Positions 1,283 through 22,825 of a stretch of 64,000 nucleotides of DNA are shown one piece after another; position 1 is the first letter of the stretch, and each line of letters begins with the position of its first letter. The position numbers and the translations under genes were made by a program. Below the pieces are notes generated by a model. That model did not search any database. It saw only the letters and a list, made by a program, of their open reading frames with translations, and was not told the origin of the DNA. The stretch spans positions 511,437-575,436 of the forward strand of contig JAWQFM010000010.1 in NCBI GenBank assembly GCA_033442325.1. Direction: 5' to 3'. The stretch comes from Salpingoeca rosetta. Taxonomy: Eukaryota; Protista; Choanoflagellata.

Positions 1283-4200
1283 GCTGCAGCCACAACGCGA
1301 GACGACCTTTGTTTGCTCAAAGGACGAGTGGATCTTCGAGTGCCTCGCTTGACAATTTCGGCTGCGACCCAGTCCCTCTGCCCCCCCCCCACGTTCATCC
1401 ATCATGCAGTGTACAGACTATGGAAAGCCAGGAGACGGCTCCAGTGCAGGCACGGCCTGCGCCTTGTCAAACAAGTCCAGCCTCCAAGACGCCTTCAAGA
1501 AGTTCAAGGCGCGACGCAAGGTACGGGCCCCGCAAAGGCGCAACAAATGCGTTGTCGATGAGCCACTTCGACGCACAAGATGGGGTCTTGTCGATAGATG
1601 AACATGCACCCTTGCGATCTCCATCATCTTGCGATCTCCATCGTCTTGCGGACTGCCAACGCTCACCACTGACACCTGCTCGTGTATGTGTGTGTGTGTT
1701 TGATGGTTAGGGCGAGATGAAGAAGCTGAAAAAGCTGGAGAAGAACGCCGGCGCCATCAAGGTGAACGGATGTTTCGTGCGGTGCATATGCAGACACACA
1801 TCCACCTTCGCACCACGCACGCATGCACATACACAACGCACACACATACAAACGCACACACACAAACGCACACACATACGCACAAGCATACGCACACACA
1901 CACACATATACACACACATGCACAACAATTTGCGCAATTGGTTATCGATCCAACACACATGTCTGACATGACTCCTCTCCTTCTTGTCCTGCTCCATTAA
2001 TTGCAATGCAGCGCACGCCAGAGATGAAAGAGCAGCTTCGACACAAGTTCCTACAACAAGTCCTCAAGTACCAAGGCGTGCCCTACCACAAAAAGTACCA
2101 CCAAGATCCGCAAAGTAAGCACACAAACGCGGGAATGCGCACGTGCGTATGCGTGTTGTGTGTGTATGTGTGTGTATGTGTGCATGTGTGTATGTGTGTA
2201 TGTGTGCGCGCGTGTATGATCACTCTTGCGTGCGCTGGCTGACCATGTTACTGCAAGCTGGTCTCACCACCCCCCATTCCCTTGATTTTGGCACGCAAAC
2301 AGGCGAGCACTACAACGCACCCCTGTATCTTGACTGTTGCGGACTTGTGCGAAGAGCACAGCGAGATCTGGAGCGCCAGTTTGGGTTCCGTCTCGGCCGC
2401 TGGAACCAGGCATACCAGGTGTGTGTGTGTGTGTGTGTGTGTGTGTGTGTGTGTGTGTGTGTGTGTGTGTGTGTGTGTGTGTGTGTGTGTGTGTGTGTGT
2501 GTGTGTGTGTGTGTGTGTGTGTGTGTGTGTGTGTGTGTGTGTGTGTGTGTGTGTGTGTGTGTGTGGATGTGGGTGTGTGTGTGGGTGTGGGGGGGGGTGG
2601 GTGGGTGTCGTTCCCGAACGCTGTCTTCGTTCTGTGTTTGCATAAACGTTCCTCTTCAGGAACTTCTTGTTTTCTTCACTCGAGCCCATCACCACTTGCG
2701 CGCTCACGCCCAATGCCTTGCACGCGTCTTGCTTCACCCCTGCAGTTTGACACGCTGCCCATTGAGCTGACGAAAGAAGAGATGAAGCCAGGCGACCTCG
2801 TGTTCATTTCTGGAACCTACTTTAACCCCAAAGTCAGTCGCGTGCACAACAGGATGCGTAAACCCCACTGTGTGCGTGTGTGTGTGTGTGTGTGTGTGTG
2901 TGTGTGTGTGTGTGTGTGTGTGTGTGTGTGTGTGTGTGTGTGTGTGTGCTTGTGCAGGTGCGGTCGTACTTGCTACACATGCAACACAAAGAGTGCTGAC
3001 AGATGTTCACACGCACACACGCACACGCACACCTGCGCGCGCTGGTTTGTTTGTGGCAGAGCAAGAAGCAGAAGCACGACATGGTGCATGTCGAGGTGTG
3101 GATGGGCGATGGCGAGAAGACGGTCGGCGCACGCTACCAGCGAGGCGTTGTGCAGGTGAGCATCACACGCGATCACACACTCACCAGTGTGTTTGTGCTT
3201 GATCACCAGTGTGTTTGTGCTTGATCAAGTGCACCGCTCGACTTGGTGCTACCACAATGCATGTACGTGCATGCACAGCACTACATTCACCTCACCCGCC
3301 CACACACACACACACACACACCTCACACACACACACACACCTCACACACACACACGCACACCATCTGTCGCGCATGCGGGCAGGTTCACGATTCCTATGC
3401 ATTTGAGAGCAAGTCGTACTACAACATGAAATATTACTTTCGGTCCATCGACACCTGGCTCGATGGCATCTGCAAGAGGTGACGAGCACCATGTCCCGTT
3501 CCACATGTTGCGCATGTGTGTGTGTGTGTGTCACGCTGTTCCGTCATTCCCCAACTTGCGTGCATCCAAACTTCGTCTCACATACAATGGGTTGCCACGC
3601 TGCAGTTTTTGCCCCGAACACGAGTGGAAGACTCTGCATCCATCTCGTGAGTGTCGTCATGATTTGGATTGCACTCTTTGTTCAAAAGTTTGGACCATTT
3701 CGAAAATCACTCGCTGTCACTCAATCCTGTGTTCCGACACGTACACATGCCCACACACTAGCACATTGGCATTTGCATCCATACACAGACAGCATGCCTC
3801 ACACACACGCACGCACACACGCACACACACGCACGCACACACATCCTCTCCTTGTCCTCCACCGCCACTCCTGCTCGCAGGCTCCAAGGTGAAATCAAAG
3901 TACTCCATCTTTCGCCAACAACAACAGCAGCAGCAGCAGCAGCAACAACAGCAACAGCAGGCGTCGTCACCGAGCAGTCGCTCATCCTCGTGTGCTGCCA
4001 GTCAGCAGCAGCAGCAGGCTGACGATGATGACGATGATGATCAACGCCAATGTCAACAGCATCGACAGCAGCGTGCATTGCATGGGCAGAGGCGAAGGTC
4101 GTCATCCAACTCACCGCAGCAGAGGGGTCTGAGTGGGGTGGTGTCACGCCACCGCTCCGTGTCGAAATCGCCGCCAACTGCAAACACAAACAGGAGGAGT

Positions 4201-19956: not shown

Positions 19957-22825
19957 ATGAGCGCTCAACAACAACAACAACGACGACGCACGGCTACCAG
20001 CAGAAGTGGCAGTGGTGGCCGTAGGCACACCTTCTTCATTGGTGGCAACAATGGCGTTGATCTCATCGCAGGTCAGTGAGAGGGGGAGCGGGCGGAGTGT
20101 GTATGTGCTGATCGTGCCGGGAGAGGCGGGGAGGGGGTTGTGTTGCATGCCAATGTGTCTGTGTCTGTGTCTGTGTCTGTGTCTGTGTCTGTGTCTGTGT
20201 CTGTGTCTGTGTCTGTGTCTGTGTCTGTGTCTGTGTCTGTGTCTGTGTCTGTGTCTGTGTCTGTGTCTGTCTGTCTGTGTGGGAGGAGGGAGCTGGGTGT
20301 TGGCGGGAGCGAGGGAATGGTTTTGTGATGAAGAACATTGTTGTTGACTGCACTCGCACACATGCACGCACATCGCAGGACCGCTGCTGGAGCGAGGGTG
20401 GGTCCGTGTTGACGATCCGGCTTCTTCCGAGGTTATACACAAGCACCATGATGAAGTACCGCAGTTGTATGTGTGTGTGTGTGTGTGTGTGCTGATGTTG
20501 CGTACCGAAACGATCTCCATTTCCTGCCTCCGACTCACGCTTTCTCACTCACTCACCCTCACATTCACCCTTACACTCACACACACTTACTCGATAATAT
20601 GCCTTTCGTGCTGTGCTCTGTTGCTTGACTCAGTTCACGCTGAAGTGGGTGGAGGTGCGCAAGCAGATTGACTTCAAGGCGTTTCGCCCAGGTTTGTCCC
20701 CTGGGCCTGCTTGGCCGTGTCGTATCGCACCCATGTGCAATTGCATTCTGGTGCTCATACGCTCACGCCCGGCTCTTCCGGCAAGAAGTGCTCACGCCGC
20801 ATCACGTTGTGTCACTGTGGCGATGACAGGGAAGCAGTTGCTGGCGAGGAATCCCAAGATCTCCGTGGTTGCATCAAAGGCAAAGCTGATCGACACGCTG
20901 CGCAGTTATGAGCGCGTTGCACAGCGCACAACGGCCACAAAGCTAAAGATGGCAGACTTCTTTCCGCAATCCTTCAAGGTCGACGATCTCAGGTGCGCCA
21001 TCCACCTTCGTGCACTGCTGTCCACTCCCTTGCTGCTGTTGCCGCTGCTGCTGTTTTAAGTTGTTGTTGTTGGTGGTGCGTTTGTATGTGTACGTCTGCG
21101 TGTGTGTATGTGCGTGTGTGTTTGTCTGTCTATCTGTGTGTCTCTGTTGTCGCTGTGCCTGCCTTTGCTGCCATTAGCAGTTGAGCCAGTCAGCTTGTAA
21201 CCACTCCAGTCCACATCCAACTGCTCATGCTGACTTGTACTGCCGTGGGTGCGCGCGTGTTTCTCTGGGCAGTGAACGACGGGAGTTCTTTGCTGCTGTG
21301 AAGAAGGATCCCAAGGCTGTGTGGATCTGCAAGCCCACGGGCATGAACCAAGGAAAAGTAAGCGCGTTGAATCGCAGACACCCACGCAGTGTGCATGTGT
21401 ATGATGGTTGTGATGATGATGATGGTGTGTGTATACGTGTGTGTGTGCAGGTGAGTGTGTGTGTGTGTATGTGTGTGCAGGTGTGTGTGTGTGTGTGTGT
21501 GTGCAGGTGTGTGTGTGTGTGTGTGTGTGTGTGTGTGTGCGTGCGTGCGTGTACAGGCTTCGTTGCATGCCCACCTGTCAGCACGGTGCGCCACGCTGTG
21601 TGCGTCAAACTCAAAAACGCACAACATCGTGCCTGCTTGCTTCTGTACCAGGGTATATTTATCGTCAAGGACGCGCAGCAGTTTGTGGCCGAGCTGAAGG
21701 AGGAAAGCGCACGGTTGCGGCAAGGAAGACAGAGGTGTGCCCAGGGCATTTCTTTGCTGGATTGCACATGAGTCAGCGACGACACACCCACTCACTCCCA
21801 CTCTCTCACTCTCTCCCATCCTCTCTTCCCTCTCTCACTTCCTCGCTCTCCCACTCTCCCACTGCCCCACTTTCTCACTCTCTCATTCACTAGCATTCTT
21901 GTTCAGTCACTCATTATCACTCACTTGCACCCACGCACGCACGCAAACGGACATCATCACCGGCCATCCCGCTCTTTCTCACGCCCCTTCAAGGCCAAAG
22001 ATGGCGAGGGTGGTGCAACGATATCTACAGCGCCCGCTGCTGCTGCAGAGGCGAAAGTTTGACATACGCGCATACATGCTCATCGCGTGGACGCAGCCGT
22101 TCCTCGTGTACTTCCACCATGGGTACCTGCGACTGAGCCTTTCGGAGTACAGCGCAGACAGCTTTGATGACACCGCAGCGCACCTCACCAACCAGTACCA
22201 GCAGAAGCGCGTTGAGGGCTTTGCTGACCGCAAGCAGGACAGCATGTGGAGCATGGACCAGTTTGTCGAATACCTTGCAACGGAGGAGGGTCGCTCAGCG
22301 GTTGCGGAGGGAGCACGGCACAAGCTCGACGGCCCCGCCGCACGCCCTGGCGATGGTGGTGGTGGTCGTGGCAGTGGTGGTGATCGGGCTGACACCAGCA
22401 ACAACGACGGCGACAGCAGCAGCAGCAGCAGCCATGATGATGGTGATGCACGGCAGCAGGGCGAGAGCGCACTAGCTGGGGCGCGGCACTGGGTCAACCA
22501 TGTCCTCACGGATCGCATGAAGGCCATTATGACCCATGCTTTCCTCAGTGCGCGCCCTCACCTGGACCGCAGCCCAGGGCTGTTTGACCTGCTTGGCTTT
22601 GATTTCATGATCGATGACGAGCTCAACGCATGGCTGATTGAGATCAACGTGAACCCAGCCCTGCACACCACGTGCAAGCCATGCCAGGACCTTTTGCCCG
22701 GCATGATTCGCACGGTTGTGGACATGGAGCTTGACCTGTTTCAGCAGTACACCAAGTCAAAGGCACCCGTTCGCCCCCCAGCAGACACCGGTGACTTCAG
22801 CCTCATTCACAAGGGCAAGCGGTGA
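19957..22825 (+). CDS. TTLL10: Tubulin-tyrosine-ligase-like protein, TTLL10-type (poly)glycylase
   Basis: Seven exons: [86 protein letters not shown]. The FxIGGxNG and WICKPTxxNQG motifs are typical of TTLL10. Confidence 0.88.
20155..20270. repeat. (TGTGTC)n hexanucleotide repeat, intronic
   Basis: Direct reading. Confidence 0.92.

Follow-up and report, generated by a model that had tools for sequence, protein, structure and literature searches.

In trypanothione synthetase-amidase an N-terminal papain-like Cys/His amidase shares one protein with a C-terminal ATP-grasp ligase and hydrolyses what this ligase has joined (PMC8942522). The same order of domains is found in the glutathionylspermidine synthetase/amidase of Escherichia coli and, as described here, in a set of eukaryotic proteins in which an NlpC/P60-type module precedes the polyglycylase TTLL10. 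Our subject is the free-standing form of this module in the choanoflagellate Salpingoeca rosetta, a predicted cysteine amidase encoded by PTSG_04199 near the start of a 64,000-nucleotide stretch of contig JAWQFM010000010.1 (the window, in which all coordinates below are counted), with the TTLL10-type gene PTSG_04194 downstream of it. The trypanothione and glutathionylspermidine systems differ from the NlpC-TTLL10 proteins in that their amidase belongs to the CHAP branch, which is structurally distant from the module (Z 4.9–5.3), their ligase is not of the TTL type and their substrates are small molecules; the two kinds of fusion look like independent, convergent arrangements. We consider the chances to be even that PTSG_04199 represents the free-standing form of an ancient eukaryotic NlpC/P60 amidase of TTLL10, with a role in removing glycine. 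On the gene itself, its splicing and expression, the fold, the near-invariant Cys and His, TTLL10 as the exclusive recurrent fusion partner and vertical inheritance, which together form the groundwork of this reading, we have hardly any doubt.

Erasers of TTLL-made side chains are established in the form of the CCP1-6 tubulin deglutamylases, which fill for glutamate the role that we propose here for glycine, but they are M14 metallocarboxypeptidases of unrelated fold and are never fused to a TTLL. The only protein deglycylases reported, those of Giardia, are reportedly metallopeptidases; their fold is likewise unrelated and their substrate is 14-3-3, not tubulin. Similarly to the activity envisaged here, they shorten a TTLL-made polyglycine chain (PMC3962474). 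Glycine removal by CCPs is not reported in the TTLL10 literature consulted (PMC12340829). The tubulin detyrosinase vasohibin-SVBP, which is papain/transglutaminase-like, is a cysteine peptidase by which a TTL-family ligation on tubulin tails is undone (PMC10318531); it represents another papain-like branch, takes off the C-terminal Tyr of the main chain and has no TTL domain fused to it. Ciliary transglutaminase-like peptidases, again another family, were predicted as possible erasers by Zhang and Aravind (PMC3495828). According to a 2025 preprint on TTLL10, an enzyme for processing chains or branches of glycine has so far not been identified (PMC12340829), and the same gap is stated in a 2026 review (PMC12838686) and in a 2024 study of Chlamydomonas (PMC11244163). 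No tubulin deglycylase is named in the titles and abstracts of the deglycylation papers that we searched.

PTSG_04199 is read as nine exons, about 475 codons in total, joined at GT-AG sites (exons A–I, Table 1). Exon D is 100% identical to the NCBI protein for this gene (P0001, 401 amino acids (aa), named 'NlpC/P60 domain-containing protein' in UniRef). A word search with this exon, made inside its open frame, was the entry point to the family, while the whole-protein steps were run on P0001 and the exons of our own model were searched singly. The motif LDCCGLV lies at 2329–2349, with the codon for the predicted nucleophile Cys at 2335–2337 and that for a second Cys at 2338–2340. MVHVEV lies at 3081–3098 and contains the codons for the predicted catalytic His (3087–3089) and for an invariant Glu (3093–3095). 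A preliminary description of this DNA had recognised an NlpC/P60 gene with both motifs intact, and they are now located in exons D and F. It also had the protein ending at KYSIF, which has to be corrected, as the exon with this motif is supported by RNA at its start and stays open through 4602, which adds a low-complexity stretch of about 230 residues in which Q, S and T are abundant. Both WLDGICKSFCPEHEW and KYSIF are found in our reading of the gene.

RNA-seq reads and RNA contigs reveal the junctions 3155 to 3384 and 3478 to 3606, and loose ends of the RNA before 3060 carry the end of exon E. Most telling for the 3′ part of the gene are the loose ends after 3647 (three raw reads and two RNA contigs), which carry the start of the KYSIF exon at 3881. 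The NCBI model agrees with exons A–H and then takes another last exon in a different frame, at about 4041–4559, which is unsupported by the RNA reads examined at PTSG_04199. K.SIF is kept at the corresponding position in homologues. The KYSIF exon from 3881 is the expressed last exon of PTSG_04199. Since the first 39 residues of the protein contain no hydrophobic stretch, there is no signal peptide and the protein would not be secreted. Long (TG)n or (CA)n microsatellites occupy most of the introns (2419–2565, 2870–2950, 3300–3360 and others). One RNA contig extends 1529 letters 5′ of exon F, whereas exons A–E, counted from the ATG at 1404, account for 474; the extra length is either a 5′ untranslated region of ~1 kb, or unannotated upstream exons, or an assembly join.

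By its structural model and by profile comparison the module has the papain-like alpha+beta fold of the NlpC/P60 superfamily. Its AlphaFold2 (AF2) model has a predicted local distance difference test score (pLDDT) of 89.8, and the best 50 matches of the S. rosetta module to the PDB in Foldseek are all NlpC/P60 proteins with a probability of 1.00. An exhaustive structural search in VIA-align gave Z scores of 12–12.7 over 113–130 residues to NlpC/P60 enzymes, namely LytE, CwlO, RipA/B, SagA, NlpC1 of Trichomonas (Z 12.7) and gamma-D-glutamyl-L-diamino acid endopeptidases, while the best listed match that is not a hydrolase is a transglutaminase with Z 7.8. When a profile of 28 modules was compared with the PDB, LDCCGLVR fell on DCSGLVR and HVEIFLG on HVGIYLG of 3npf/3pvq. 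The bacterial enzymes of this group (MEROPS C40, including LytE, CwlO, RipA/RipB, MepS, SagA and the YkfC type), which cleave the amide at the gamma-carboxyl of glutamate, have in common with the module not only the fold but also the position of the Cys on the first core helix, in D-C-x-G, and of the His in the H-V-x-I/V strand. In contrast to them, the module is eukaryotic and cytosolic, carries additional N-terminal helices (SLQ..F.KFR) and a C-terminal extension (W..G.C.S.C.EH.W and K.SIF), has invariant H-x-E, GAR and NQ.Y motifs that depart from the canonical ones, lacks the canonical third His, and is joined to TTLL10 instead of wall-binding domains.

Conservation was counted in an alignment of 276 modules, with the denominators given by the modules that have a residue at the site. 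D-C-C is kept in 251/251 and the Cys alone in 252/252, the His in 260/261 and the Glu two residues further on, in H-x-E, also in 260/261. The Arg of GAR is present in all 255 modules and the Asn-Gln of NQAY is essentially invariant. Because these residues are nearly invariant over so many modules, we argue that the module is a functional catalyst in each lineage, as far as sequence can indicate. Directly after the module, in fused and free-standing forms alike, the conserved K.SIF is followed by an acidic, Gly-containing stretch that resembles a tubulin tail. This stretch could act as a pseudo-substrate.

When a profile of the module was run against 1.84 billion representatives, 332 clusters matched with E ≤ 1e-30 and, with the looser limit of E ≤ 1e-10, 700; the best 150 matches (222–388 bits) all belong to the eukaryotic module family. 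A TTL domain is found in 42 of these 150 clusters, including 30 of the 35 that are at least 600 aa long, and in every one of the 142 proteins that hold both domains the module is N-terminal. In the opposite direction, starting from the TTL domain of one fused metagenomic protein, 89 of its 119 relatives carry the module and the remaining 30 are all of 593 aa or less. No other recurrent partner was found among ten proteins with an internal module or other extensions; Rdx and MFS, with one match each, were set aside as probably merged gene models. TTLL10 is thus the sole recurrent fusion partner of the module, and the majority of lineages that have the module have it as the N-terminal domain of TTLL10. 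The fusions are distributed over vertebrates, invertebrates, stramenopiles and a ciliate: those of axolotl, Pogona, king cobra and Biomphalaria are named 'polyglycylase TTLL10', further animal examples come from shark, lamprey, sea star, the annelid Owenia, a land snail and a nemertean, the stramenopile ones from Triparma, Ectocarpus, Spumella and a chrysophyte, and the ciliate one from Ichthyophthirius. In structure, the ESM Atlas entry that matches the module best is a cluster named 'Protein polyglycylase TTLL10' (917 aa), which is found most often in Cnidaria; the template modelling (TM) score is 0.74. The feature search of the same resource returned only generic TTL and NlpC clusters.

The TTL half of the fusions is, by sequence similarity, true TTLL10. 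The fused TTL domains score 450–690 bits to named TTLL10 proteins, 215–286 to PTSG_04194 and 100–138 to TTLL9, and that of a stramenopile fusion scores 208 bits to TTLL10 of Branchiostoma (amphioxus) versus 91.6 to the solved TTLL3. The preliminary description had put forward an N-terminal fusion in some ciliate and stramenopile TTLL10-like proteins, which turns out to be right and understated, as vertebrates and many invertebrates have it too. Its idea of a Rosetta-stone pair also holds, in the sense that both S. rosetta proteins are orthologous to halves of one protein that is fused elsewhere. Automatic database names already mark the NlpC domain on some of the fusions. In the open literature searched (subscription literature was outside this search) we found no paper that links NlpC/P60 with TTLL enzymes or glycylation. 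A predicted NlpC/P60 amidase whose partner belongs to the eukaryotic cytoskeleton would stand in parallel to the synthetase-amidases.

PTSG_04194 encodes a protein (P0149) that consists of the TTL core alone, with no N-terminal module. It is identified as the TTLL10 orthologue by sequence similarity and by its position in the tree. Among named proteins it comes closest to metazoan 'protein polyglycylase TTLL10' sequences (141–185 bits), compared to ~80 bits for TTLL9 and 68.8 bits for the solved Xenopus TTLL3, and in a tree of 51 rows it falls into a clade with metazoan TTLL10 (support of 99 in the Shimodaira-Hasegawa-like approximate likelihood ratio test, SH-aLRT), which leaves out TTLL9, TTLL2, TTL and three other S. 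rosetta TTLLs (TTLL3/8 are not among the sequences of this tree). The ATP-grasp motifs ICKP, QRY, KFD.R.Y, HLTN and LIEINVNP are intact in P0149 and match invariant columns of 46 fusions; the large last exon carries QRY...KFD.R.Y, HLTN and LIEINVNP of this core. A low-complexity Gly/Ser/Asp-rich insertion, at about 22330–22500, lies between HLTN and the C-terminal half of the TTL core and breaks the Pfam match into two stretches. The S. rosetta genome contains about a dozen TTL-family loci (contigs C3, C4, C5, C6, C10, C12, C14, C23 and C26). One of them, at C3:676k, was considered as a better TTLL10 and rejected, as it groups with TTLL9, its best PDB matches are TTLL6/TTLL7 and its initial rank was an artefact of exon splitting. 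Searches of PDB sequences with the TTL domains found no TTLL10 structure, and the TTLL subfamilies are not separable there.

The two S. rosetta genes lie on the same strand with the module gene upstream and the TTLL10 gene downstream, that is, in the order of the domains in the fusion. From the stop of PTSG_04199 (4602) to the start of PTSG_04194 (20051) there are 15.4 kb, spanning two N gaps of estimated length, so the preliminary description was accurate on strand and on the distance of about 15 kb; however, it counted two genes between the pair, while the NCBI annotation gives four, three of them on the reverse strand. Because of these four genes the pair cannot be read from one transcript. 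Both gaps fall among the intervening genes; as neither reaches into the two genes of interest, the reading frames described here are unaffected by them. PTSG_04199 is single-copy in a genome search of the 55 Mb S. rosetta genome, and the chance of a pre-specified partner gene being found within ±20 kb is roughly 7e-4. It is therefore unlikely that a gene present in a single copy and the one partner known from its fusions have met by chance on the same strand, in the same order and with 15 kb spacing. The arrangement fits with a remnant of a formerly adjacent or joined pair, separated by later rearrangement.

Table 1. Features of the PTSG_04199–PTSG_04194 region of the window.
Feature	Position	Strand	Evidence or remark
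PTSG_04199, NlpC/P60-type cysteine amidase gene (predicted)	1404..4602	+	exon/splice reading, database protein P0001, RNA junctions
PTSG_04199 exons A-I	1404-1520, 1711-1761, 2012-2114, 2303-2418, 2746-2832, 3060-3155, 3384-3478, 3606-3646, 3881-4602	+	GT-AG splice reading
Exon D with NAPLYLDCCGLVRR	2303..2418	+	100% identity to P0001
Exon F with MVHVEVWMG...GAR	3060..3155	+	His and Glu codons of predicted active site
Last exon, start (R)SKVKSKYSIF, then polyQ, Ser/Thr-rich, poly-Asp tail	3881..4602	+	RNA loose ends; K.SIF conserved
Annotated gene, 154 aa	5114-5725	-	NCBI gene call
Assembly gap	5937-6350		(CAT)n(CAG)n and (TG)n on its flanks
Annotated gene, 486 aa	7345-11723	-	NCBI gene call
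Assembly gap	8529-8851		(TG)n flanks
Na/H exchanger gene	11875-15586	-	NCBI gene call
Annotated gene, 407 aa	16234-19405	+	NCBI gene call
PTSG_04194, TTLL10-type polyglycylase gene	20051..22825	+	413 aa, tree and bit scores
Large last exon of PTSG_04194	21974..22825	+	Pfam TTL 3.2e-41; 98% match to P0149

Free-standing modules are not confined to this locus. Complete ones of ~280–320 aa are found in several choanoflagellate transcriptomes, in the jakobid Andalucia, in the ancyromonad Fabomonas, in the hemimastigote Spironema and in a second transcriptome, which we take from its source label 'Hemi2' to be that of Hemimastix, and Volvox carteri has one of 222 aa (P0343, VOLCADRAFT_116960) with LDCC and HVE intact. 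Short TTLL10 proteins without the module are also found in choanoflagellate transcriptomes, and therefore S. rosetta is not alone in having the split state. The module tree recovers Metazoa (support 93), vertebrates (98), choanoflagellates (80) and stramenopiles (96) as clades; outside the choanoflagellates the S. rosetta module is nearest to those of animals, and the deep branches are poorly separated. As the tree tracks taxonomy, it argues for vertical descent of the module from an early eukaryote, with no recent bacterial import. The possibility raised at the outset, that the homologues would be mainly bacterial wall hydrolases, was checked in the same way, and the homologues are eukaryotic. 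Scattered as they are, the free-standing forms could reflect repeated fission, or else the genes were neighbours ancestrally and have fused independently in other lineages. A python candidate was rejected: on Liasis olivaceus CM061356.1 (L039) a module gene of 226 aa, a gene of 233 aa and a TTL gene of 804 aa follow each other on one strand, and they probably represent a single TTLL10 gene that the annotation has broken into three.

What would such a module do next to a glycine ligase? We propose that it is a hydrolase acting on the product of glycine ligation at glutamate side chains of tubulin tails, where it would cut either the gamma-glutamyl-glycine bond at the branch or the Gly-Gly bonds within the chain. 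It would thus be an eraser or trimmer, either built into TTLL10 or acting as its partner, and together with TTLL10 it would set the length of the glycine chain, in parallel to the synthetases whose amidase domain undoes the bond formed by the ATP-grasp domain of the same protein. The substrate is inferred from the fusion partner and from the type of bond cut by the nearest folds. Such a cut is proposed because the nearest folds cleave amides at the gamma-carboxyl of glutamate, because the branch point of glycylation is itself a gamma-glutamyl-glycine bond, because relatives in the NlpC/P60 superfamily cleave bonds in glycine cross-bridges and because trypanothione synthetase pairs its amidase with the ligase that it reverses. 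That the module is functionally coupled to the TTLL10 pathway in some way appears likely to us. The full form of the proposal, that the N-terminal module of TTLL10 is the long-sought tubulin deglycylase and TTLL10 ancestrally a bifunctional ligase-amidase, able to trim glycine chains as well as to lengthen them, is put forward more tentatively, at somewhat less than even chances.

Several observations weigh against this proposal or parts of it. The Pfam model NLPC_P60, PF00877 of the papain-like clan, scores P0001 at 20.8 bits, under the gathering cut-off of 23, and exon by exon PTSG_04199 gives one match of 12 bits at most; relatives score 22–28.5 bits, with P0016, P0028 and P0005 above the cut-off. 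A counterpart of the polar residue that completes the triad in canonical NlpC/P60 enzymes, a His, Asn, Gln, Glu or Asp about 10–12 residues past the His, is not identifiable in the module, where the usual site reads Gly, in IGAR (stretch T-I-G-A/S-R); the invariant Glu of H-x-E or the Arg of GAR may stand in for it. Modelling of a whole fusion with AF2 gave two confident domains, with a disordered acidic linker at 271–307 and a predicted TM score (pTM) of 0.63, and fixed packing of the two active sites is not evident in the model. On two protist contigs with a free-standing module there is no TTL gene within 10 kb. Residues 105–570 of X. tropicalis TTLL10, which do not include the module, elongate glycine chains in vitro in a self-limiting manner (PMC12340829); since this construct is active the module is not needed for ligation. 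Lastly, Chlamydomonas is reported to have TTLL3 only and to lack TTLL10 and polyglycylation (PMC11244163), so that the presence of the module in Volvox weakens a strict partnership with TTLL10, although it fits with removal of monoglycine branches.

Since the nearest solved folds cleave gamma-D-glutamyl bonds, the module might instead be a branch-point deglutamylase, removing gamma-linked glutamate from tubulin tails and so freeing or exchanging the sites contested by glutamylases and glycylases. Glutamylation and glycylation share the tail glutamates, as is generally known of the tubulin code, and glutamylation recruits TTLL10 (PMC12340829). Branch-point deglutamylation is, however, already performed by the CCP family, including CCP5 (references in PMC12340829; PMC13425397), and the exclusive fusion partner of the module is a glycine elongase rather than a glutamylase, so we regard this alternative as unlikely. 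To about the same degree we doubt a regulatory role, in which the module would process or unmask TTLL10 via K.SIF and the acidic linker, or would edit glycylation of non-tubulin substrates such as NAP1. The likeness of this linker to a tubulin tail, its place next to the module whether a TTL domain follows or not, and its disorder in the AF2 fusion model agree with such a role, and the amidase site of Leishmania trypanothione synthetase is reportedly blocked by the enzyme's own C-terminus. The free-standing forms, however, retain the catalytic residues and the tail while having no TTL domain to process.

A non-hydrolytic function in vivo, either as an acyl- or peptidyl-transferase of the LRAT kind or as a binder of gamma-branches that positions the elongase, appears improbable. 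The superfamily does include acyltransferases (LRAT is among the Pfam families of a bacterial C40 cluster), a third triad residue is not evident in the module, and a branch reader would be sensible given that TTLL10 requires pre-existing monoglycine (PMC12340829), but the near-absolute conservation of Cys and His over the 276 modules speaks for catalysis, and the closest folds are of the hydrolytic P60 branch (Z about 12), with the transglutaminase far behind as the best listed non-hydrolase. That PTSG_04199 is an ordinary secreted peptidoglycan hydrolase of a bacterivore, acquired from bacteria as in Trichomonas and close to TTLL10 by coincidence, is very improbable: every solved neighbour is a wall hydrolase that is either bacterial or was acquired laterally, Trichomonas NlpC1 among them, and some members bear the JGI label 'cell wall-associated NlpC family hydrolase', but there is no signal peptide, 142 proteins have the module fused to a cytosolic tubulin ligase, vertebrates possess it, its tree follows eukaryote taxonomy and the best 150 profile matches stay within the eukaryotic family.

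The reading of PTSG_04199 as a glycine-removing amidase of TTLL10 matters since glycylation is, according to reviews and the 2025 TTLL10 preprint, the one major modification of tubulin tails that has no identified eraser. The module family is a specific candidate for this role: its catalytic residues are intact, and animals, vertebrates among them, as well as stramenopiles and a ciliate have it physically linked to the glycine elongase. The S. rosetta candidate is a small, separate, single-copy gene in a species for which gene editing is established, which makes the question directly testable. Biochemical studies of TTLL10 on constructs without the N-terminal module may overlook half of the function of the enzyme. 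If its origin is independent of trypanothione synthetase-amidase, the NlpC-TTLL10 fusion would be a second case in which one protein unites an amidase with an ATP-grasp ligase, and, if the proposal is true, the lineages that have split off or lost the module, such as choanoflagellates and perhaps frogs, whose TTLL10 forms among the sequences examined have no module, would have uncoupled the writing of glycine chains from their erasing.

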